Assembly (NCBI GenBank): GCA_038496445.1
Contig: JALMLS010000336.1
Location: 62,001 to 126,000 of the forward strand
Length of the DNA stretch: 64,000 bases
DNA from: Trichosphaerium sp. ATCC 40318
Taxonomy: Eukaryota > Protista > Tubulinea
Direction of reading: 5' to 3'
Below, piece by piece: positions 1 to 40,601 of this stretch. Under the pieces are notes generated by a model that worked only from the letters and a program-made list of their open reading frames with translations, made no database searches and had not been told where the DNA came from. Numbering within the stretch: the stretch's first letter is position 1; every line of letters starts with the position of its first letter. Made by a program: the position numbers and the translations under genes.

Positions 1-133
1 AAGGAAGAACAAGAATGTAGTTTGTAGAAGAGCGTAGGCCATTTTTCCTCGACAAGTGAATTCGTTGATATCTAACTAAAAACCACGAGTTTTCTGAACG
101 CCTTTGACCCTGCTGGACCATGGCTACATTCAT

Positions 134-205
134 ATTTCATCTGCTAATTAAGGGGCAAACCCCAGGTTCGATGGAGAACCTGAGTTATACTAAAAAAGTA
201 ACGCG
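134..205. ncRNA. Candidate structured element, copy 1 (unknown family)
   Basis: ATTTCATCTGCTAAT, then a small variable hairpin, then stem CAGGTTC/GAACCTG with loop GATGGA, then GTAACGCG. Recurs at 426-490 with compensatory stem changes. Confidence 0.45.
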
Positions 206-425
206 AAACAGGATTTTTTCAACAAAATTCAATTTTTAAAGTACGCTATCACAACAACACGTGTTTTTACAAAAAAAAGTCTTTTATTTTTCTAATTAGT
301 TTGTCATTTTTGGCACGTAACAAGAACCTTTCCGGGCACCATAACTTAATCACCATAGGCGCTTACAGCTGTATCTTTACACGTATTTAAGCTCCGCTTA
401 AGTCAAATAAACCAAACAAACAAAC

Positions 426-490
426 ATTTCATCTGCTAATAGGTGCTTTCCCAAGCTCGATGGAGAGCTTGTGTTGTACACTGTAACGCG
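426..490. ncRNA. Candidate structured element, copy 2 (unknown family)
   Basis: Identical 15-mer ATTTCATCTGCTAAT; stem CAAGCTC/GAGCTTG with the same GATGGA loop; GTAACGCG downstream. Confidence 0.45.
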
Positions 491-577
491 GATCGCGGTA
501 AAGTCCGGATCAAATCAACGTATTTGCAACAAGTATTTTATTATTGTACAGCATTTTGCGAGAGAGGGATTGTTCAT

Positions 578-3500
578 TCACATACCACTATCTTTCTCTA
601 TAATTTTGTTCATAGCATCGATTATTTGCATTAATGAAGGGCGACCTTCAGGAACCAGACATCGACATTTGTTCATCAAATCCTAAAATGAAAACTTAGC
701 ATACGCTTGATAAAAACAATAGGATTTGGTGTTTCAACGTACAACAACTAGTTCAGGTGCATCATCTGGTATATCTAACTCTGGCATTTTACCTGCCTTT
801 GCACCAAGTGCAATATCAATAACGTCAGTATCATCATAAGGTGGTCTTCTTGCAATCTTTAAGTACTTAGTTAATACAAAGTTTCTCTTACAACTGTTTG
901 TGCTTTTTAGGCTTACCACTTCATAAAGCATTGTTCCATACATGAAAACATCAGAAGCTATAGAGTATTTTTTATGTGAGATAGATTCTGGTGCCATACA
1001 CTAAACACAAAGAACGGTAAGTAGGCTTTTAAGTCAGTGAAAAAATATATAAAAGAGGGTACCTGAATGGGACCTCTGTAAGATGTTGATCGAAGATACA
1101 TTGCATTATCTTCCATAAACTTACTGACACCGAAATCAGTTATGACAGCTTGCCAGTTATTCCTAACAAGAACGTTTCTTGAAGCTAATAAAATAAGATT
1201 AACTATTGACTAAACCAAAGTTCAAATTGTTTATCAAAGAAAAGAGTTGATAGATAGGTAAAAATGACGTTCAACGCCTGGCTTGAAGAAGTGCTTTAGT
1301 AAAGCAATCAAATCATAGCAAAGGCAAGAATAGTCGTATGACCGGAATCAAACAGGTAAAAAGTGTCAGTAAAGTCTTCCGTACCAACATCTCGATGTAA
1401 TAGATTATTACTATGTAAAAATAAAAGACCATTAGCTGCATCAATAAGCATCTGGTATATTGTTCCCATAGAAACTGAATCCTTTTGTTTTATCAAAATA
1501 TCCCAAAGTGATCCCTACACAAAAAACCACGTGGGTCAGCCGACAAGCAACAACAAAAACTTAATAAAAAACTAGGATGAACTCAAAAGATAGTTGACTC
1601 GTACCCTTGGACAGTATTCCATAATGATAGACAACTTATCAGTAGAGCTTATAGAAACACCTATTGTCTTAATAACATTCTGATGGTTACCCATTTTAAT
1701 CATAAAAGCAGCTTCTTGTAAACCAACTTGAACATTCTCAAGAAATAGTTGCTTCACAGCAACTTTCTCTCCTTTGTATAGACCCAAGTACACGGTCCCC
1801 TGCAATACAAATTCAATAAGAAAAACAACAAATAACTACTGAAGAAGGAGAATATAATAGACGTACAAATGATCCTTGACCAAGAGTCTCATGTGTTTCA
1901 ATTTCATCACTTGAAATGTTTTCAACATTAACATACTGTTTCCTAGGTTTGTTTTCTTCCTGTAATAGATCCTGAGGCCATTCATTTGCTTGAGGTTGTA
2001 GTTGCTCTTGTTGTTGGTGAGACCATTCTAGAGGTTGTGGTACAAGAAGGTCAGAAGGATCTTGTGGTTGCGCTTGATACTCTTGAGTAGGTTCACCATA
2101 AGGGAACGCTGGCTCTACTGGATACTGTCCATCTTCACGCTAACAAATAAGTTAGGCTTACAAAGCGCCTGCTTGGCATAAAAAGGCGTACATAATGCTG
2201 CTGTTGTCCACCAAGGAGACTTTGGCTTTCACCTCCTTCTTGTCCAACAAACACTGGATTACGAATATTTTGAACTGGATCAATATCATCTTTGTGATTC
2301 TTGTACCTTTGGTAACAAAAAGAACAAGTAACCAAAAACCCGCAGAAAAGAAAAATACCAGCAACAATCAGTACATATACATATTCTGGCACTTTAACAT
2401 GCTTAGGGGCTGGAATTGTAGGTGTTGGCGGGACAGGAGAGAACGTCCTCATTGGAGGCAGATCTTTGTAAGGAGTTGTGTCAGGAGTTGGTACTTGTGT
2501 TGGAGCGTTTGTAAGGGAAGCTGGTGGTATTGTAGACTGTGTTGTTGGTGATACTGTAGTGATTGGATCCTTGAAAGGGTAGTTTGGATTACTTATGTTA
2601 ATTGTACATAAAGAACAAAATCCAGCATCTGTTGTATTGCTTTGAAAGAAAAAAGACAGTTAGTATGAAGAAATAATAGCTGTCAAACAAAAATAAAGAT
2701 AGGCGGTTTTGAGTGCATAAGACAAAGGAGTTTATAACGTACAGACACAGTTGTGTAAATATTTTACACCTGTTTGAGTGCTCTGATATTAAAGACTGTT
2801 TTCTTGCTTCCCAGAAGCTTAATGATAAGCTATTAATATCACTGGGACTTTGCGATGTTGTTAAGGTAGGTTCAACATGCAGAAGATGTTGTTTATTCAA
2901 GTTACTAGTAACTAAAGTTAATAATCTTTGTTGTTCATTATATCTCCCAACGTGCCTTTGTGTTACCTCGCTTGAACTCCTTCCACCCCAATAATTATGA
3001 GATAGTGTGTTGTTAATAACGTTATCACTATTCAAGTCAACATCATTACCATAAAATGAATTACGAATGACTTTTTGTGTGATATCGTCATCAACAACTA
3101 ATCCACTATAACTATAACGTATTGTATTGTACTGTATAATGGGTACTTCTCCATCAATAGCATCATCGTGTTTATTCAGAAAAACGTTAATCTAACGCAT
3201 CATAGTACTGTTAGAGACATCAAAAATAAAGGAAGGTCCGTACCTGATTTTTTTCTATTATGTTGTTTGAGACATAAACATTCTGAATGAAATTCACGTC
3301 CACTGCTTTGTAGTTGAAAGCGAAATAACATCTTGATACATTCGCATGAAAGGATACTTCCATACCACATATGGAAGAGCCATAGACAACACTTTTTGTC
3401 ATAGATATTGAGGTATTAATATTTTGTGCTCTCATAGTTGGTGTGTTCAATGAAGGTCCTTGTACGTTTGCAAAAAATATACAATCAGATATAACACCTA

Positions 3501-4252
3501 CATAATAAAGTTAAGTGTATTAAAACCACTAGAACACAAGCAAATTTATATTCCTAAAGTAAAAATGATAAAAACTAGTGAGGTGACATTGTTATTTTGT
3601 TGTTTCACTTACCACCATATATTTTAAAGTATTGTGCGTATTTAACAATAACATGACTGAGATGCGATGAAGGACCATAGTCCTCTGTGTGTAAATAGCT
3701 AATATTCAAAGAAACAGTGTCTATTGTAGTGTAATTCATTACTACTCTCCCTTTGACAAGAATCGAATTCTTTGATGTAAAGCCCTACAACAGTATCAGA
3801 AAAAAGTTGAAAACACTCTGAGGTTACAAAGGGTAGTATCACGTGTTATACCTTTAAAAGCACGGGATCAGACTCTGTTCCTTCACAATATATCCCTTGT
3901 TCAACTGTAAGTATCCCTTCCTTAGTGAAAGTCAGATAAAAGACAAAAAAGAACAAAGATTTCAAAGAAATTGCGACAATGCGATTTACGTTATGAAATT
4001 CCACGATAACGCCGGCGTGTATTATTAAAGGTTGTTCTACAATACGTTGATCACTTATAACGTATGTTCCATGCTCTTTTGTCCACTAGAGAGTATTGTG
4101 AATTCGTTAATGTCAAAAAAGCGTAAATTAGGTTGAATACGCCAACCTATAGCGTTACAAGAAGTATTACGTACTATTTTATTTTGGCATACACCCAACG
4201 TAATTACTAATGATATGAACACCGCAAATACGCGTGTTCGCGCGTAGTTCAT
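578..4252 (-). CDS. Single-pass receptor-like tyrosine kinase / TKL kinase (multi-exon)
   Basis: Signal peptide (MNYARTRVFAVFISLVITLGVC), beta-rich ectodomain, Pro/Thr stalk and TM (YVYVLIVAGIFLFCGFLV). Kinase motifs GQGSFGTVY, VAVK, HRDVASRNVL, DFG, MAPE, SDVFMYG. Stop TGA at 578-580. Confidence 0.85.
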
Positions 4253-4455
4253 AGTATGAGCAACAGCTTTTGCGAAAGAATACAACCAGAATATTTTTTG
4301 AACCTTTTTTGACCAAAATAAACCTCTTTAGGCAATACTACCGTGTTTTAGCAGTTGGCGGGTTTACTTGTCTGACTCAACATTAAATCAAGGCTTAGAG
4401 CGCGTTTTGAACTCATTCTGACTGAATACTTTATCTCTTTTTTACAATTTTGGTT

Positions 4456-5407
4456 TTACATAGCTCCAGGCTGTCCTCTACGGTTCGTTCCTGGTTTTGA
4501 CGATGCTTGAGCACCCATTTCTAATCCCTCTATAAACTTTCCGTACTGTGTCTTCTGTAGCACATCACCAACACCCAAAAACCACTCTCTGAGTGTTTTC
4601 TCCTTTGTTACAGGGTCGAATGTTTTAAAGGCGAATAATCGCTTGTGCTTGTTGTGACGCCCAGGTACAGGCTTAATACCAGTACGTCTATTATACATCT
4701 TTGTCTGAGTGGTACCAAAGAACGTCAAATTAGACACCTGAAGGTAGCGTGGATCTACAAAAAAGAAGTCAAAAAAAAACCGTTTAGATGTCAAAACTAG
4801 TTCATTACTGCAAAAGCAGTACGAAGCAATAGAATAGATCAGTGTCTAATAGATTAGTGGAGAAAGGCAATGATTAATTTACCTGACACGAAGGCAATCT
4901 CGCAAATCGTTGCTTTGGCCTTTAAATGACTGTAAGTGATCCAAGCCAGAGTGAATAGTAATGGCGGTACGACAAGGAGAGGGTTGGATACAGAAGCTAC
5001 ACCCCAAGCGTGAATAGGAAGCTATTTAGGTAGTTTTTAATAAATAATTTTTAAAATCTTGTTAATTCGCTTACTGCTGCCAGTGATACCATGCAATTAC
5101 AAAATACGCCCGTCTTCCATATTTGTTTCATCTTCCAGAAGGGTGGTAAAGCTTCTGGTGCTGGCTGATTATTCTAGAAATAAAGTGAGTGTTTATAAAC
5201 TCAACTAGTAGCTGTTGTAGCGCGTACAGTTGAATAACAGACTCTTGTTACGCGTAATGGTGCTTGTGGTGTACGAATTTTTTTCACGCTTGTGCGAGTA
5301 CCTCGGGAGACGCTAGGGTGTATGTAAGAGCTAAATTATTCAAAAGAATATTTGACGTACCGTATTACCCCCGATCTGGCTGTAAATCCACGTCCGAGAG
5401 CAATCAT
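4456..5407 (-). CDS. Putative mitochondrial inner-membrane protein, TMEM70/TMEM186/TMEM223-like
   Basis: Spliced product starts MIALGRGFTARSGVSRGTRTSVKKIR (Arg-rich presequence-like), has two hydrophobic segments, then ICEIAF..DPRYLQVSNLTFFG, resembling the post-TM beta motif of this family. Confidence 0.55.
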
Positions 5408-22045: not shown

Positions 22046-23371
22046 ATGAACTATAAGATAATGTTATCGCATGTATGGCGTTTTGTGGGAAGAACTAAAA
22101 TTTTTATCGGTATCTTTGCTGTTTTTACACTTTATCTAACGTCAACGCTTCTCTACGAAGCGCTAAACCTCAATAAGGAGTCAAACAGTAGTATAGGAGA
22201 AAATACGAAAGAAATTGCTTGGAATCACGTGATAGATACCGTAAACCACGGAAAGGATTCAGAATATGAAATAGTCGCTTGTGCGATGACTAAGAACGAA
22301 TATCACATAAGACAGTGGGTGGCTTGGAATCTATTAGCTGGTATTGACCATATCTACCTCCTGGACAATAACGATGATAATACAACGCTATACAATACGT
22401 TACATCCTTTTATAGATCAAGGTCTTGTTACTGTCAACACTTTAACAAGTAGTGAAAGTGGAATTGAGGCACATAAGCTTGACATACACAAAGCGACAGA
22501 AATGTGTTTTAATACTTTCAAGGATCGTGGTGATTGGATGATTATTCTTCACACTGATGAGTTCTTGTACTATGAACCACATGGTGGTGAAAATACATCA
22601 ACATCTATAAACGGAATTAATACTTTTCTTGATCGATATAAAGACGCACGTGATACGCTTACTCCACCTAAATATAGACCTGATATTAACGTTGTGCCTG
22701 ATGTGTGTGGTATATGGGTAACATGGTCTTTTATTAATACATGCGGACAACTAAGGGCTTCGCCTTATGGATTGTTATCAGCAAATGATGAAGTGTATAT
22801 GGGAGGATGTGGTAAAACAATGTTCAAGCCAAAACAAGTTGAGAGGTTACGTGTTCATACAGTCAACTGTGTTGGATTTAGTCATAGTGATACACCTAGA
22901 GGATGTGGTCTTGATAATAGAGGTGTAATAGCACAGAATCGTGAAGGTCAATTACATCTATTACATTATTATTCGAAATCAGTTGAAGAGTTTGCTCAAA
23001 AGATATCTCAATCAATACCTCCTTATTATCGTCACTTCTCAGATCAATTCGATTTTTATGTCAATGAAGAAAGATCAAGAAGTCTTGAAATATCAAAAGA
23101 GTTTAAGGATATTATAAAGTATTTTTCACATGTATTACCACCTGGTGAGTTTATTCCTGATTTGGATACAACGAAGAAAAGAAGTGAAATATTTAATTAT
23201 TTCATAAAGATTTTAGACAAAGAAGAGAGTGGTGATTTTGACGGTGTGTCTTATAGTAATCTATACCCTGATTCAAAAAATAGAGGCTATTATCAATGTC
23301 CTTTACATCACTTTATAAAAAAAGGATTTGGTGAGGGAGCAAAAGGTGTATGGATGTACCAATTAAACTGA
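22046..23371 (+). CDS. Type II membrane glycosyltransferase, GT92/GT2-like (intronless)
   Basis: 441-aa ORF with an N-terminal TM; IVACAMTKNEYHIRQWVAWNLLAGIDHIYLLDN, DWMIILHTDEF, KTMFKP, LLHYYSKSVEEF. Confidence 0.85.
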   Translation: MNYKIMLSHVWRFVGRTKIFIGIFAVFTLYLTSTLLYEALNLNKESNSSIGENTKEIAWNHVIDTVNHGKDSEYEIVACAMTKNEYHIRQWVAWNLLAGIDHIYLLDNNDDNTTLYNTLHPFIDQGLVTVNTLTSSESGIEAHKLDIHKATEMCFNTFKDRGDWMIILHTDEFLYYEPHGGENTSTSINGINTFLDRYKDARDTLTPPKYRPDINVVPDVCGIWVTWSFINTCGQLRASPYGLLSANDEVYMGGCGKTMFKPKQVERLRVHTVNCVGFSHSDTPRGCGLDNRGVIAQNREGQLHLLHYYSKSVEEFAQKISQSIPPYYRHFSDQFDFYVNEERSRSLEISKEFKDIIKYFSHVLPPGEFIPDLDTTKKRSEIFNYFIKILDKEESGDFDGVSYSNLYPDSKNRGYYQCPLHHFIKKGFGEGAKGVWMYQLN

Positions 23372-23436: not shown

Positions 23437-24603
23437 CTATCTTCCCATTATAGTAATTTGAAAGAAATTGTATACTATAGTAGCCCCATGTAAGGCGTTC
23501 ACTGCATCATATGTTACAAATGTATCATTGAGGTTAATGCTATGTACACCAACTAATGCTAAAACACCACCATCCATTACATTTGTACCGCTAAGATCAA
23601 TTGTGTGAACACCGGCTAAAGCCTTTACACCATCATTTGTCACCTTTGTTTGCTTAAGACTGATTGTATGCACTCCCGCTAATTGTTTGATCCCAACATC
23701 TGTAATTTGTTCACACTTATCCAAAAGAATAGTATGAACACCAGCTAAAGGCTTAATTCCGTCATCTGTCACGTGTTGACAAAATCGTAAATCGATTTTG
23801 TGTACGCCTGCTAATGCCTTCAAACCCTCATCTGTAACCTTCACACTGTGGAGATCAATTGAATGAACACCTGACAGCGCCTTGATACCATCATCTGTAA
23901 TATGTCTACACTCTCCAAGTTGTATTGTATGAACACCAGACAATGCCTTTAAGCCGTAGTCTGTTACAATTGTATTCTCAAGGTTAATTGTATGAACACC
24001 TGCTAGTTCTTTTACACCCATCCCAGTGACATGTGTAAAGTGTAGATTAATTGTATGAACACCTGCTAATGATTTAATACCTTCATCTGTAACAAAAATA
24101 CATTCTCTTAAGTCAATAGTATGAACCCCAGACAATGCCTTAACACCTTCATCCTTTACTGTTGTTGAGCTTAATATAATCTTATGTATTCCAGAGAGTT
24201 GTTTAAGATGATCATCAGTAACACTATTACTGGAACTAAAGTCAACACTATTAACAACGTTTAAGTCTGTAAAGTCAAGAGTCGATATCCAATGATGTAA
24301 CTTTAAGTCATATACTCCTTGCAAGTATTGCAAGTGTTTTTGCTTGATATTGAACTGAATAACAATCTTGTGCTTTGTTATCAAGTATGGTGCCTTTTTG
24401 TTCAGTTTTTTGAGCTTTTTGCTCGTTTTTATGATGATCTTTCGAACGTTTTCGTATCCCATGTGTTGCACCGATATTTTCGCTAGGAATTTACTTGTAT
24501 GTACTACTGAGTGCATAGTTAACTCGGGAACGTATTGCAGAATATGAACAATGACTTCAACTGGGATTTCATCAAGAAAAGCACTGTTTGCGTTCATAGT
24601 CAT
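23437..24603 (-). CDS. F-box plus short (21-22 aa) leucine-rich-repeat protein (intronless)
   Basis: F-box FLDEIPVEVIVHILQYV; about 12 tandem repeats of LAGVHTIDLxxxxVTDEGIKA. Confidence 0.9.
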   Translation of the reverse strand: MTMNANSAFLDEIPVEVIVHILQYVPELTMHSVVHTSKFLAKISVQHMGYENVRKIIIKTSKKLKKLNKKAPYLITKHKIVIQFNIKQKHLQYLQGVYDLKLHHWISTLDFTDLNVVNSVDFSSSNSVTDDHLKQLSGIHKIILSSTTVKDEGVKALSGVHTIDLRECIFVTDEGIKSLAGVHTINLHFTHVTGMGVKELAGVHTINLENTIVTDYGLKALSGVHTIQLGECRHITDDGIKALSGVHSIDLHSVKVTDEGLKALAGVHKIDLRFCQHVTDDGIKPLAGVHTILLDKCEQITDVGIKQLAGVHTISLKQTKVTNDGVKALAGVHTIDLSGTNVMDGGVLALVGVHSINLNDTFVTYDAVNALHGATIVYNFFQITIMGR

Positions 24604-34369: not shown

Positions 34370-34602
34370 TTGGCAAGTATTTAAGTCAATCGTTGCCTAT
34401 TTGTATCAAAAAGATGCTAAATAATCTGTCGGTTCAATCTGGTCTTCTCTGTTCGTGTATCTCAGTCAATGAGAGTATACGGCGCTGGTTCAGCTATTTG
34501 TCCTAACGTTAGCCGTTAATTAAACCTAAATCAGTCAAAATAAAACACGTGACAACTAGACAACTTGTTGGCTATCTCTTCATTTTTTTTGTTTTTTGGA
34601 CT

Positions 34603-36480
34603 ATGCTTCATGGTACGCTTTCTAAAACCAGGATTTATCTCAACGAGCTTTCTCACATTCCTACAAGTTTGTTGTACTTGGTGTTTTTTCATTCAACGCA
34701 CGTGCTATTCTCCAATCTAATTTTTTATGAAATAGCTTTATGGACAAAGCCAAGAATAAAGTCGGAGTCTTCCTTTACTCTGTTAGATATTCCTATTGAT
34801 ATTCAATGCTATATATGCACGTTTGATCTTGAAACATTTGATAAGTTTCATACTCTATCAAAGAGAGCTGCAGTAAACACACATTTTAATAAACACCTTG
34901 AAATGCATGGTGGTTGGATATTTTGGCATAAAAATGGTAATGTGAAAGAAAGAAGCAGTTTTATTAATCATAAGCGCAATGGTTTAGCTACTCAGTGGTA
35001 TGATACTGGGGAACTCCTCCAACACATTTGGTTTGTTGATGATAAGGCTAGCGGAGAGTGTAGGGTATGGCATAAAAATGGACAATGTAAACATGCTGTT
35101 GGTTACGTTGAAGGTAAGATACATGGAGAGTATTCAAGGTGGTTTGAGAATGGACAACTTGAGATACAGTGTATGGTCCTTTATAACAAGACACATGGAG
35201 AGTATTTGAGGTGGTATGATAACGGAAACCTACTGGTACAATGTGCGTATGTCAAAGGTGAGGAGAATGGCAAGTATTTAGAGTGGTACAGGAATGGGCA
35301 ACTTTATAAGCAATGTGCCTATGTTAAGGGCAACGAAAATGGTGTTGTTAAGCATTGGTATGAGAACGGGATGTTAAGCCAACATTATACATGTATTGAA
35401 GGTAAGATGCATGGAGAATATTTATCATGGTTTGAGAATGGACAACTTAATGAACAAAGCAAATATGTTAATGGTAAGATTCATGGCGACCGTTTTTTAT
35501 GGTTTGAAAATGGGCAATTAGAAGAGCAGTATGTGTATGTTGATGGTATGAAGAATGGTGAGTGTATTTCATGGTTTACGACTGGGCAACTACATGAACA
35601 ATGTAACTATGTTAATAGTAAGATGCATGGAGAGTATTTAGTATGGTTTCAAAATGGACAACTTGAGATACAATGTACATTCCTTGAAGGCAAACCAATT
35701 GGAAAGTTTTTACACTGGCACGAGAATGGGATATTAAGCCGACAATACTCATGTGCTAAAGGTAAGATACATGGAGAGTATTCGAGGTGGTTTGAGAATG
35801 GACAACTTGAGATACAGTGTATGGTCCTTTATGGCAAGATACATGGAAAGTATTTGGAGTGGTTTGATAACGGAAACCTTAAGGTACAGTGTACGCTCCT
35901 TAATGGTTTAGAAAGTGGAAAGTATTTATGTTGGTATGAGAATGGGCTTTTATGTGAGCAAAAAGCATATATTGAAGGTAGGGTGCATGGAGAGTATATG
36001 CATTGGTACGATAATGGGCAACTTCATGAACAATGTGAATATGCTCATAGTAAGTTACATGGAAGGTATTTACAATGGTTTCAACATGGACAACTTCATG
36101 TACAGTGTAAATATGTTGATGGTGTGTTAAACGGCAGAAGGATTGTCTGGTATGAAAATGGGCAGCTTCAATTAGATTGTACTCTCATTGATGGCAAAAA
36201 CAATGGTGAAGTCAAAGAGTGGTATCATACTGGGCATCTACATGTACAGTGTTCATATATTAATGGTAAGTTAAACGGAGTATACAAGAGATGGCATGAA
36301 AATAGACAACTTTATACTCAGTGTGTTTATGTTGATGGCATGAAAAATGGAGAGTACATAGTGTGGTATGACAATGGACAACTATTCGTACATTGTACTT
36401 ATGTTGATGATAAAGAGAGAGGTGAGTACAGACAGTGGTATGAGGATGGAACAATTAATGTACAGCGTTATTTTGAATGA
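34603..36480 (+). CDS. F-box-like N-terminus plus about 21 MORN2-type (24 aa) repeats
   Basis: LLDIPIDIQCYICTFDLETF; repeats of HGEYxxWFENGQLxxQCxYVxGK. Probable ATG at 34603 with an in-frame 123-nt intron (34613-34735). Confidence 0.88.
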   Translation: MLHGTLSKTRIYLNELSHIPTSLLYLVFFHSTHVLFSNLIFYEIALWTKPRIKSESSFTLLDIPIDIQCYICTFDLETFDKFHTLSKRAAVNTHFNKHLEMHGGWIFWHKNGNVKERSSFINHKRNGLATQWYDTGELLQHIWFVDDKASGECRVWHKNGQCKHAVGYVEGKIHGEYSRWFENGQLEIQCMVLYNKTHGEYLRWYDNGNLLVQCAYVKGEENGKYLEWYRNGQLYKQCAYVKGNENGVVKHWYENGMLSQHYTCIEGKMHGEYLSWFENGQLNEQSKYVNGKIHGDRFLWFENGQLEEQYVYVDGMKNGECISWFTTGQLHEQCNYVNSKMHGEYLVWFQNGQLEIQCTFLEGKPIGKFLHWHENGILSRQYSCAKGKIHGEYSRWFENGQLEIQCMVLYGKIHGKYLEWFDNGNLKVQCTLLNGLESGKYLCWYENGLLCEQKAYIEGRVHGEYMHWYDNGQLHEQCEYAHSKLHGRYLQWFQHGQLHVQCKYVDGVLNGRRIVWYENGQLQLDCTLIDGKNNGEVKEWYHTGHLHVQCSYINGKLNGVYKRWHENRQLYTQCVYVDGMKNGEYIVWYDNGQLFVHCTYVDDKERGEYRQWYEDGTINVQRYFE

Positions 36481-38408: not shown

Positions 38409-40601
38409 ATGAACACCTCCTCTGCGAGGTACGTACAAAATACTCCATTTATCTAACGTAAGAAATATTCTTACAACATTTTTAGTTTCATTTTTGCTTG
38501 CCTTATCGCTGTCGTGGCATGTGGAAACCTACAGTATTATGGTATGCGTATACGTGTTATTTATTTACCTAACATTGGATAGGCGTCAACTATGCTGGAG
38601 CAGGTATTTCGCAGTTTTTTGTTTCGTAACGTCGTTTATCCTAAATGAACCTAGAGTTTGGCCATGGTAACTTCTGGCCTCAAGCAAACACTGTAGACTA
38701 CTTTATCGGACAGGTACAAAATCACGTGTTTGTTTGTTGTTTTTTTTGTTCGTTTGAAAAGTTTGGCCGACTTCGCGAACTGACTTGTTTATAAGGGCAT
38801 GTGTACTTTTAGAGTACCTTTCTTGTGGCAAAGACTTCAACAACCAGCAGATTTCAGCATCCGCTTTGGAGAAACACAATACTGGAATGAACTAAAGGAC
38901 TCAGTCGACCTTATCACTGGAAAAGGTGGAAGCTATATTATTGATCCACACAACTAGTACGCCAAAGACTATTCCCGTCTTTTCTTTTTGACTCACAAAA
39001 ACTACTAGCGCAAGGTATGACTCGAACAAACACTGTGAAGGCCCATTCTGTGGCAATGTCCTAGACAGTGGAGAAGCATCACGTGATGACTTTATCGGCA
39101 TGTGGCGCCTATTTGCTAGAGAGTACAGCTCAAACTCACGTGTTATTTTCGTATGTTCTGAATTTATCGATTTTTTGTTTTTGTGCCACATCTCACATAT
39201 CTCCTCTTCAGGGTCTCATGAACGAGCCACATGATCTCGGTGGTTTGGGTACACATGGTTGGAGACAAATCGTCCAACTCACAATCAACGCAATCAGAGA
39301 AGAAGGTCCGTTCTTCTTTTTCAGTACTTCTCTATTTTTTTAGCTAACTTCTTCATTGTAGGTGCCAATAACTTGATCCTTGTCCCTGGTAACCACTGGA
39401 CTGGTGCTCACTCTTGGCTAAACTCAGAGTACGTCATTAGTTTCTATTTAGTAACAGTCTCCTTTAATACTACTGTAGTAATGCTGCAAACTTTGAAGGA
39501 CTCCAGGATCCTGCAAACAACTTTGCTATTGAAGTTCACAACTATTTCGATGGCGATCACTCTGGCACAAACTCTGGCTGCGCAAGTACGTCATAACAAA
39601 ACAATTTAGACTTGATGAGTAAGGTACTAACAGCCGGTTGTAGGCAACTGCGAAAACCAACTCAGCGGCTTTACTAGCTGGTGTAGAAGAAATGGATACA
39701 AAGCACTTTTGGGTGAATTCGGCGGTGGTAGAAACAACAACTGCCAAACATGTATCACTGATGTCATGGAGTACGTTGTTTACCTCTAGTAGCTTTTCGT
39801 TTCTCTCTTACTTAGTTCTACTTTTTAACCGTTTATTAGACACATGGAAGGTAATAGCGATGTATGGATTGGATGGACTTGGTGGGCAGCTGGCGAAGAA
39901 TGGCCAACTGATTATCTATTTAATCTTCAACCTGTTGGAGGTGACAGACAGCAAATGTCTTGGTTGACACCTTACACTGGATGTAACGGAGGAACATCTA
40001 CCCCTACACCAACACCTACACACTACCCCAACACCAACACCAACCCCTACACCTACCCCAACACCAACACCAACACCAACCCCAACACCAACCCCAACCC
40101 CAACACCAACACCTACCCCTACACCAACACCAACCCCAACACCAACCCCAACACCAACGCCAACCCCAACCCCAACGCCTACACCAAGCCCTGGCGGTTG
40201 CCCTACCGTTCAAAATATTGCTATCAACAGTACGAGGAATCTCGTGTAAAACTGCAGTAGTTTAATTTTTTTTTAGACTGGGGAAGCGGAATGAATGCTT
40301 TGGTTAGGATCTCGTCATCATCCACATTAACTAGCCTTAAAATACGTCAAATCTCCTCAAACGGAGCTGTACCACTTAACTGCTGGTCGTCTCAACGACA
40401 TAACGCAGTAAGCGAAACTGATACAGAGGTACGATCGAATGCTACATTACCCAACATTTTATCACGTGCTAATTATTTAAATAGATTAATTTCTGGAACC
40501 CATTCAACTCCGGTATTACTGAAGTATACGGATGTACCTGGAGCAAGGGCGATAACAATCTCCAAGTAGTTATTTTGGAAGCAAACGGACAACCATGCTA
40601 G
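38409..40601 (+). CDS. Secreted GH5 endoglucanase with Pro/Thr linker and CBM2-like module
   Basis: Signal peptide; GVNYAGAEFG, FRVPFLWQRLQ, DPHNY, GLMNEPHD (acid/base), FEVHNYFD, LGEFGGG (nucleophile), WIGWTWWAAG. PT linker, then C..NWGSG..W..C. Confidence 0.92.
39995..40190 (+). repeat. (ACN CCN)n Thr-Pro linker repeat in the cellulase
   Basis: Tandem ACACCA/ACCCCA hexamers. Confidence 0.9.

Follow-up and report, generated by a model that had tools for sequence, protein, structure and literature searches.

Close to the start of the window, by which we mean the whole 64-kb stretch of DNA analysed here, lies a locally duplicated unit whose two copies (131–294 and 423–548) share a hairpin that has stayed fully base-paired through two compensatory swaps. 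We tentatively suggest, at somewhat less than an even chance, that the copies are paralogous genes for a small Pol III-type non-coding RNA of no assigned family, encoded on the plus strand. The structure-preserving pattern of substitutions, the sharp bounds of the unit, its non-coding character and its end at a T-run make a pair of small-RNA genes the explanation which fits best. The main rival is a neutral local duplication.

The duplicated unit and its surroundings

The window is eukaryotic and AT-rich with a G+C content of about 36%. To one side of the unit a receptor-like protein kinase gene is found on the minus strand (737–4800; Pfam PK_Tyr_Ser-Thr); many introns of 60–100 nt interrupt it, and its product has a predicted transmembrane segment. 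According to the reading frames, its last coding exon comprises 734–1000 with the stop codon at 734–736. A contig of run X1 skips a 90-nt kinase intron at 1514–1603, which has GT..AG ends on the minus strand; therefore run X1 is RNA and the intron is real. On the other side, an X1 RNA contig covers positions 1–58 and continues past the window edge. A minus-strand ATG is present at 42–40, followed by a hydrophobic N-terminus in the reading frame. ATG, N-terminus and contig together place the 5′ end of a second minus-strand gene (1–58) near position 58. Copy B is found 186–311 nt downstream of the kinase stop codon and copy A 76–240 nt upstream of the gene starting near 58. The duplicated unit sits in an intergenic spacer, with the 3′ end of the kinase gene on one side and the 5′ end of the second minus-strand gene on the other, in the genome of an intron-rich, amoeba-like eukaryote. 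By eye, no open frame runs through both cores on either strand, and a minus-strand coding exon was rejected, as stop codons break every frame common to the copies.

Further along the window several other open reading frames attracted our attention. A 643-aa open frame of MORN_2 repeats (34549–36480, plus strand) has its best database relatives among bacterial and chlamydial YwqK-like repeat proteins (21–40% identity) and no close eukaryotic match in that search; it may have been acquired from a bacterium associated with an amoeba. A 388-aa LRR_6 protein (23437–24603, minus strand) has its nearest ESM-Atlas clusters among F-box/LRR proteins that are listed under giant viruses (Nucleocytoviricota). 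A 441-aa open reading frame with glycosyltransferase family 2/92 domains (22046–23371, plus strand) gave no homologue at E ≤ 1e-5 in a search of 5.8 billion proteins. Finally, the open frame at 39829–40260 (plus strand) ends in long Thr-Pro and Asn-Pro dipeptide-like repeats; the stretch before the repeats presumably resembles the C-terminus of a glycoside hydrolase, as judged by eye.

The extent of the unit follows from global and local alignments of the two copies. Copy A is 164 nt long and consists of a core (131–207), an insert private to this copy (208–235, an alignment gap opposite copy B, with a T6 run at 214–219) and a tail (236–294). Copy B is 126 nt long with its core at 423–492 and its tail at 498–548. 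Without gaps, the cores are 79% and the tails 80% identical, and the unit as a whole 78%. Many insertions and deletions separate the copies, the 28-nt insert of copy A among them, and 9 of the 27 mismatches across the unit are transitions. The homology sets in abruptly at a 15-mer and stops at a T-run. AAGTnTTTTATTnTTnTA terminates both tails, which carry T-runs at their ends, at 282–285 and 287–291 in copy A and at 536–539 in copy B. Beyond these limits the comparisons of 1–130 with 208–422 and of 295–422 with 549–760 score like shuffles. A simple 292-bp tandem repeat was rejected, since 295–422 has no match to 549–760.

It had originally been proposed that short conserved islands are embedded in otherwise unrelated DNA. 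This description does not hold, as the downstream flanks are themselves homologous (236–294 against 498–548, local alignment p = 0.004) and are 80% identical without gaps, as compared to 79% for the core. With a whole unit of 126–164 nt at about 78% identity, the idea of conserved islands fails. The object is a locally duplicated unit, neither two short islands in unrelated DNA nor a simple tandem repeat.

The 15-mer itself, ATTTCATCTGCTAAT, is indeed identical at all 15 positions in the two copies (134–148 and 426–440) and, with up to two mismatches allowed, it is absent from the rest of the 64-kb window. When the match and mismatch columns of the alignment are permuted, 23% of the permutations contain an uninterrupted run of matches equal to or longer than the one around the 15-mer. 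The exactness of the 15-mer looks like chance and is unremarkable at the identity of the unit. Given this figure and the overall identity of 78%, the exact 15-mer, the hairpin loop and the common element GTAACGCG are on their own not evidence of selection. Core and tail are equally identical; thus there is no sign that a "functional" part has been better kept.

Hairpins, consensus fold and the proposed pseudoknot

The short variable hairpin described between the 15-mer and the main stem was found. In copy A, hairpin 1 is read from the sequence as GGGGCAAACCCC at 152–163 and appears partly in the minimum-energy folds. Its counterpart in copy B, GGUGCUUUCCC at 442–452, is weaker, with 3 bp, a bulged U and a different loop. 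RNAalifold does not recover hairpin 1 because the region is gapped.

The 7-bp stem with the invariant loop GATGGA is present as described (hairpin 2; 163–182 in copy A and 452–471 in copy B) and can form on either strand. The stems read CAGGTTC/GAACCTG in copy A and CAAGCTC/GAGCTTG in copy B. Pairs 3 and 5 are swapped, from G–C to A–U and from U–A to C–G, so that 4 of the 14 stem bases differ. All four changes are transitions which restore pairing, and the two compensatory swaps that had been claimed are real, with both sides changed at two pairs and all pairs Watson–Crick. We estimated how often 7 Watson–Crick pairs would be kept after four random substitutions in the 20-nt hairpin and obtained p = 0.011–0.029, depending on the transition bias. 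In a narrower substitution model with two transitions in each arm, pairing of hairpin 2 is kept in 4.7%. Hairpin 2 seems to have been kept for its structure, with a modest signal of p about 0.01–0.03. The covariation rests on two pairs, because there are only two copies.

Hairpin 3 is recovered by RNAalifold and comprises GUUAU/GUAAC with a 9-nt loop at 184–202 in copy A and GUUGU/GUAAC with a 5-nt loop at 473–487 in copy B. It contains one A–U to G–U change and a U–G pair, and therefore it forms on the plus strand only. All five substitutions in hairpins 2 and 3 keep pairing. The downstream common element GTAACGCG is present, at 198–205 and 483–490, and supplies the 3′ arm of hairpin 3 together with the GCG of a 3-bp closing helix. 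In the plus-strand RNAalifold model the UGC of the 15-mer (142–144) pairs with this GCG (203–205), and 134–141 are unpaired.

Compared to column shuffles of the alignment of the two cores, the consensus fold reaches z = −3.4 on the plus strand, with 0.4% of the shuffles as good, and z = −3.1 on the minus strand. The minus-strand consensus fold from RNAalifold comprises hairpin 2 and lacks hairpin 3 and the closing helix. The G–U pairs favour the plus strand, a preference which is mild given the short helices. As single sequences the folds are not unusually stable; most have z-scores of −1.4 to −1.9, and copy A read on the minus strand has −2.6. The more general claim that structure rather than sequence is under selection stands for hairpin 2 (two swaps, consensus z = −3.4). 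The remainder of the unit is weaker in this respect, with its uniform identity of about 78%.

A pseudoknot between the loop of hairpin 2 and the upstream sequence had also been proposed. On the plus strand UUCAUC (136–141) and the loop GAUGGA can indeed form 6 bp, one of them G–U, adjoining the closing helix. However, in 19–22% of the shuffles of the 5′ segment an equally good complementarity arises, and all six pairs are invariant, so that there is no covariation for the pseudoknot. The pseudoknot looks like chance and is supported neither by the statistics nor by covariation.

The linker between the proposed pairing partners contains UGCUAAU, which is also the U6-pairing heptamer of U4 snRNA. 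The likeness to U4 and U4atac snRNA consists of this heptamer in a single-stranded stretch. Upstream of the heptamer the unit is much shorter than these snRNAs, and it lacks the 5′ stem–loop, the stem II segment and the Sm site. That no other U4 features are present was correctly stated at the outset. The U4 and U4atac models give no match at E ≤ 10, and the alignment contains no A(U)nG Sm-type site common to the copies.

Searches for relatives and transcripts

Scanning the whole 64-kb window against Rfam 15 at gathering thresholds gave no match. At E ≤ 10 the region 1–800 gave five weak minus-strand matches to unrelated bacterial leaders and sRNAs and a 12.7-bit U6 fragment outside the units. 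Assignment to a known family thus fails, as anticipated: no relevant family was found at the gathering threshold or at E ≤ 10. We then built a covariance model from both cores, which scores copy A with 102.6 bits and copy B with 87.5 bits. With filters off, the search of the window for more copies returned only these two. Pattern scans of metagenome, viral and prokaryotic collections yielded 13, 2 and 14 loci, all of them chance matches without the stem; the best covariance-model score among them is 19 bits (E = 0.1). Seven of the metagenome loci (L004, L007, L008 and L010–L013) belong to a near-identical repeated element containing CATCTGCTAAT...TCGATGGAGA, which is unrelated to the unit and probably is a multi-copy gene or mobile element of another organism. 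A full-text literature search for the motif returned only primer coincidences, and no paper printing it was found. Two copies are not yet a family.

We also compared the unit with known classes of RNA genes and mobile elements. In the tRNA-derived Pol III units (tRNA genes and SINE heads) three hairpins are likewise closed by a short helix, as in the core on the plus strand, and GGTTCGA of copy A resembles a B box. In contrast to a tRNA, the sizes are wrong, with a 6-nt loop on the 7-bp stem and a closing helix of 3 bp. ARAGORN finds no tRNA gene in the window. A tRNA-derived SINE was rejected as well, as GGTTCGA of copy A reads GCTCGA in copy B and the B-box-like bases are not kept. Of the snoRNA boxes, sought by eye on both strands, CUGA is present in copy A only and the minus-strand AGAUGA is at the wrong end, which speaks against a box C/D snoRNA. 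The hairpins of the unit show no pseudouridylation pockets by eye and no snoRNA family appeared in the Rfam searches, so that an H/ACA snoRNA was dropped. A spliced-leader RNA does not fit, since the stretch before GUAACG differs between the copies and no Sm site is common to them; moreover, the RNA contig of the neighbouring gene ends at 58 without a foreign leader. For a transposon terminus or MITE, inverted termini and flanking duplications are missing, and there are two copies in 64 kb. An LTR pair, a Helitron end, SECIS, U7 and an HDV-like fold were dropped by eye because their defining parts are lacking. None of the small self-cleaving ribozymes (hammerhead, twister, pistol, hatchet, HDV-like) matches at E ≤ 10, and the order of the helices suggests a misfit with the HDV-like or pistol topology.

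The Class I RNAs of the social amoebae deserve a closer comparison. PMC7919456 describes them as RNAs of 42–65 nt with a 5′ AAG and a 3′ CUGU, a terminal stem joining the ends and an 11-nt motif beside the 5′ arm; a DUSE is placed about 60 nt upstream of every expressed Class I gene, and the family is stated not to be found outside Dictyostelia. The unit resembles the Class I RNAs in being, if transcribed, a short non-coding RNA with multi-copy genes in which stem structure has apparently been kept over sequence, with a single-stranded conserved motif near the 5′ end and with a downstream T-run. In contrast, the Class I length, the AAG and CUGU ends, the terminal stem and the DUSE are in no case found in both copies. 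The units begin with CAUAUUUC and AACAUUUC and have no common CUGU end, and the only closing helix is internal and has 3 bp. A Class I RNA was therefore rejected.

A further likeness is to the orphan small RNA genes of Amoebozoa with DUSE-type, U6-style external promoters, with which we compared the unit by description. These genes too are intergenic, have few neighbouring paralogues and a length of about 85–125 nt, form short hairpins, end at a T-run and have no Rfam family. Upstream of copy B, boxes resembling DUSE and TATA stand near −63 and −30. The unit differs in that the boxes precede one copy only and that the DUSE-like box has two Cs and a G in last position. It is not a member of any family tested and, if real, it would be another orphan among the amoebal small RNA genes.

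Among twenty sequencing runs listed under the same species label, none contains this stretch. RNA contigs from four of the runs were compared with positions 1–4000. Three contigs were found, none of them over 134–490, in data which are sparse and would miss small RNAs. They are assembled contigs, presumably from ordinary RNA libraries, and a gap in their coverage is no proof that a small RNA is missing. Run X2, which carries the same species label and is only guessed to be RNA, contains a 154-nt contig 90–95% like 498–582. The remaining 68 nt of this contig match neither the sequence left of 498 nor any other part of the window. The X2 contig may represent a paralogous sequence or a strain variant adjoining copy B.

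Candidate small RNA genes and rival explanations

According to PMC7919456, small RNA genes of amoebae are recognised by a DUSE lying about 60 nt upstream and by a T-run as terminator; two-C variants of the DUSE occur in some species, and the DUSE is not expected to be kept outside Dictyostelia. We scanned for such signals. Upstream of copy B only, a promoter-like pair consists of ACCATAG (352–358) and TATTTAA (384–390) on the plus strand, at about −63 and −30 from a start near 414–420. When a DUSE is sought about 60 nt upstream, as [AT]CCCA[CT]AA or in its two-C form, copy B alone has the two-C-like ACCATAG; the consensus is dictyostelid and may not be that of this genome. The pattern ACCAYAR-N18-30-TATWWAW, which was written after seeing the site, has just this one match in the 64-kb window, with 0.84 expected. 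A canonical DUSE is absent from 1–1000, and no upstream motif common to both copies at a fixed distance was found. At the other end, the 3′ limit of the unit coincides with T-runs (282–291 and 536–539), as expected for a Pol III terminator. The T6 run at 214–219 in the insert of copy A would end a Pol III transcript early. A hairpin drawn by hand before the T-run, with one compensatory pair, reaches −2.4 kcal/mol in copy B and is missing from the prediction for copy A; a conserved terminal hairpin was dropped as energetically negligible.

From these features we infer that the unit could be transcribed from the plus strand by a Pol III-type polymerase in the following way. A segment of about 126–164 bp was duplicated locally in the spacer between the two minus-strand genes. 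The RNA would start at the 15-mer or a few bases before it, leaving about 8–11 bases unpaired at its 5′ end. Three short hairpins (of 4, 7 and 5 bp) would then be enclosed by the 3-bp helix between the UGC of the 15-mer and the GCG of GTAACGCG, and the RNA would continue via a loosely structured tail to the T-run. Copy B looks like the working copy. Its RNA of about 115–125 nt would end at 536–539, and it may be driven by the DUSE-like and TATA-like boxes as in the U6-type Pol III genes of social amoebae. Copy A has no such boxes and its insert carries the T6 run; thus its product might be shorter, about 85 nt, or the copy might be in decay. As to a possible activity, we speculate that the RNA would most likely serve as the scaffold of a small RNP or that its free 5′ tail would pair with a target.

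Several points speak for the small-RNA genes, namely that hairpin 2 is Watson–Crick paired despite 4 changes in 14 bases, that the consensus fold reaches z = −3.4, that some of the helices are specific to the plus strand, that a sharply bounded unit ends at a T-run and that the boxes of copy B are in the right orientation. Against them stand the two copies, the missing common upstream element, the post hoc promoter pattern, the internal T6 of copy A, the weak single-sequence folds, the negligible hairpin before the T-run in copy A and the failure to find a homologue in the collections searched. A neutral relic, with a spacer duplication which drifted to about 78% identity and a chance palindrome whose symmetry survived by luck or through templated correction of the inverted repeat, would involve no functional RNA. 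The uniform identity (79% core, 80% tail), the unremarkable 15-mer run, the many indels including the 28-nt insert, the missing common promoter, the weak single-sequence z-scores, the pseudoknot at chance level and the absence of any other copy or homologue in the window and in the metagenome, viral and prokaryotic collections all agree with such a relic. Yet 7 Watson–Crick pairs are left after four substitutions (p = 0.011–0.029), five of five substitutions in hairpins 2 and 3 preserve pairing, and a perfect 7-bp hairpin in 165 nt is uncommon, roughly 0.08 by a rough estimate rather than a calculation. Nor is the unit a simple tandem repeat, as nothing after copy B corresponds to the 128 nt that separate the copies. 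We consider the neutral relic somewhat less likely than the small-RNA genes and the strongest competitor to them. Clearly less probable is a cis-acting element of the minus-strand neighbours, acting in the 3′ UTR or termination of the kinase gene (copy B) or as an upstream regulatory or leader element of the gene near 58 (copy A). Both neighbours are indeed on the minus strand, with copy B starting 186 nt past the kinase stop and copy A ending 76 nt before the end of the RNA contig of the gene near 58. The first two hairpins can fold just as well on that strand, AATAAA-like words are just upstream of both cores on it, and 498–582 may be transcribed, since the X2 contig resembles it. Against this, the G–U pairs of hairpin 3 and the closing helix become A–C mismatches on the minus strand, the 15-mer is at no other gene in the window, and a palindrome bound by protein would be expected to keep the sequence of its half-sites and not to co-vary; the X2 contig is only guessed to be RNA and diverges left of 498.

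The free 5′ tail of the proposed RNA invites a more specific version, in which the unit encodes an undescribed small structured RNA of amoeboid protists with three hairpins, a short closing helix and the U4-like UGCUAAU in the tail, acting as a guide or partner of, for example, U6, and in which the contact between loop and 5′ tail is real. This we regard as improbable. A self-cleaving ribozyme or aptamer with a compact pseudoknot, or a U4-like RNA that pairs with U6 via UGCUAAU, appears very improbable. Six pairs between the loop GAUGGA and UUCAUC are feasible on the plus strand next to the closing helix, and UGCUAAU matches the U6-pairing heptamer of U4; but the complementarity is reached by 19–22% of the shuffles, its six pairs are invariant, no Rfam ribozyme, U4 or U4atac model matches at E ≤ 10, and by eye the Sm site, the K-turn 5′ stem–loop and the stem II segment are missing. 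The resemblance to a small ribozyme or aptamer put forward in the original prediction is not borne out, with no Rfam match at E ≤ 10 and single-sequence z-scores of only −1.4 to −1.9. Alternatively, the copies might be decayed remnants of a short mobile or retroposed element (such as a SINE-like Pol III unit) that arrived in two separate insertions, which would account for the sharp limits of the homology and agree with the unrelated DNA between the copies. GGTTCGA of copy A resembles a tRNA-type B box, and the X2 contig holds a diverged relative of 498–582 with a different left neighbour. However, target-site duplications, terminal inverted repeats and an A-rich 3′ tail were not found, the bases resembling a B box have changed in copy B, ARAGORN sees no tRNA relation, and the 64 kb contain just two copies and the metagenome, viral and prokaryotic collections none, so that we give this origin only a slight chance. 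The small-RNA gene, which was among the original suggestions, comes out as the best functional reading, on account of the swaps in hairpin 2 and the consensus fold with z = −3.4; it is unproven.

In summary, the two most striking claims about this DNA, conserved islands in unrelated DNA and a pseudoknot, fail, and the remaining signal is modest: a hairpin kept by two compensatory changes. With two copies and no relatives, the unit opens no long-standing question. If it is transcribed, it would be one more unclassified small RNA in a protist genome, which would help genome annotation and would help in asking what such RNAs do.
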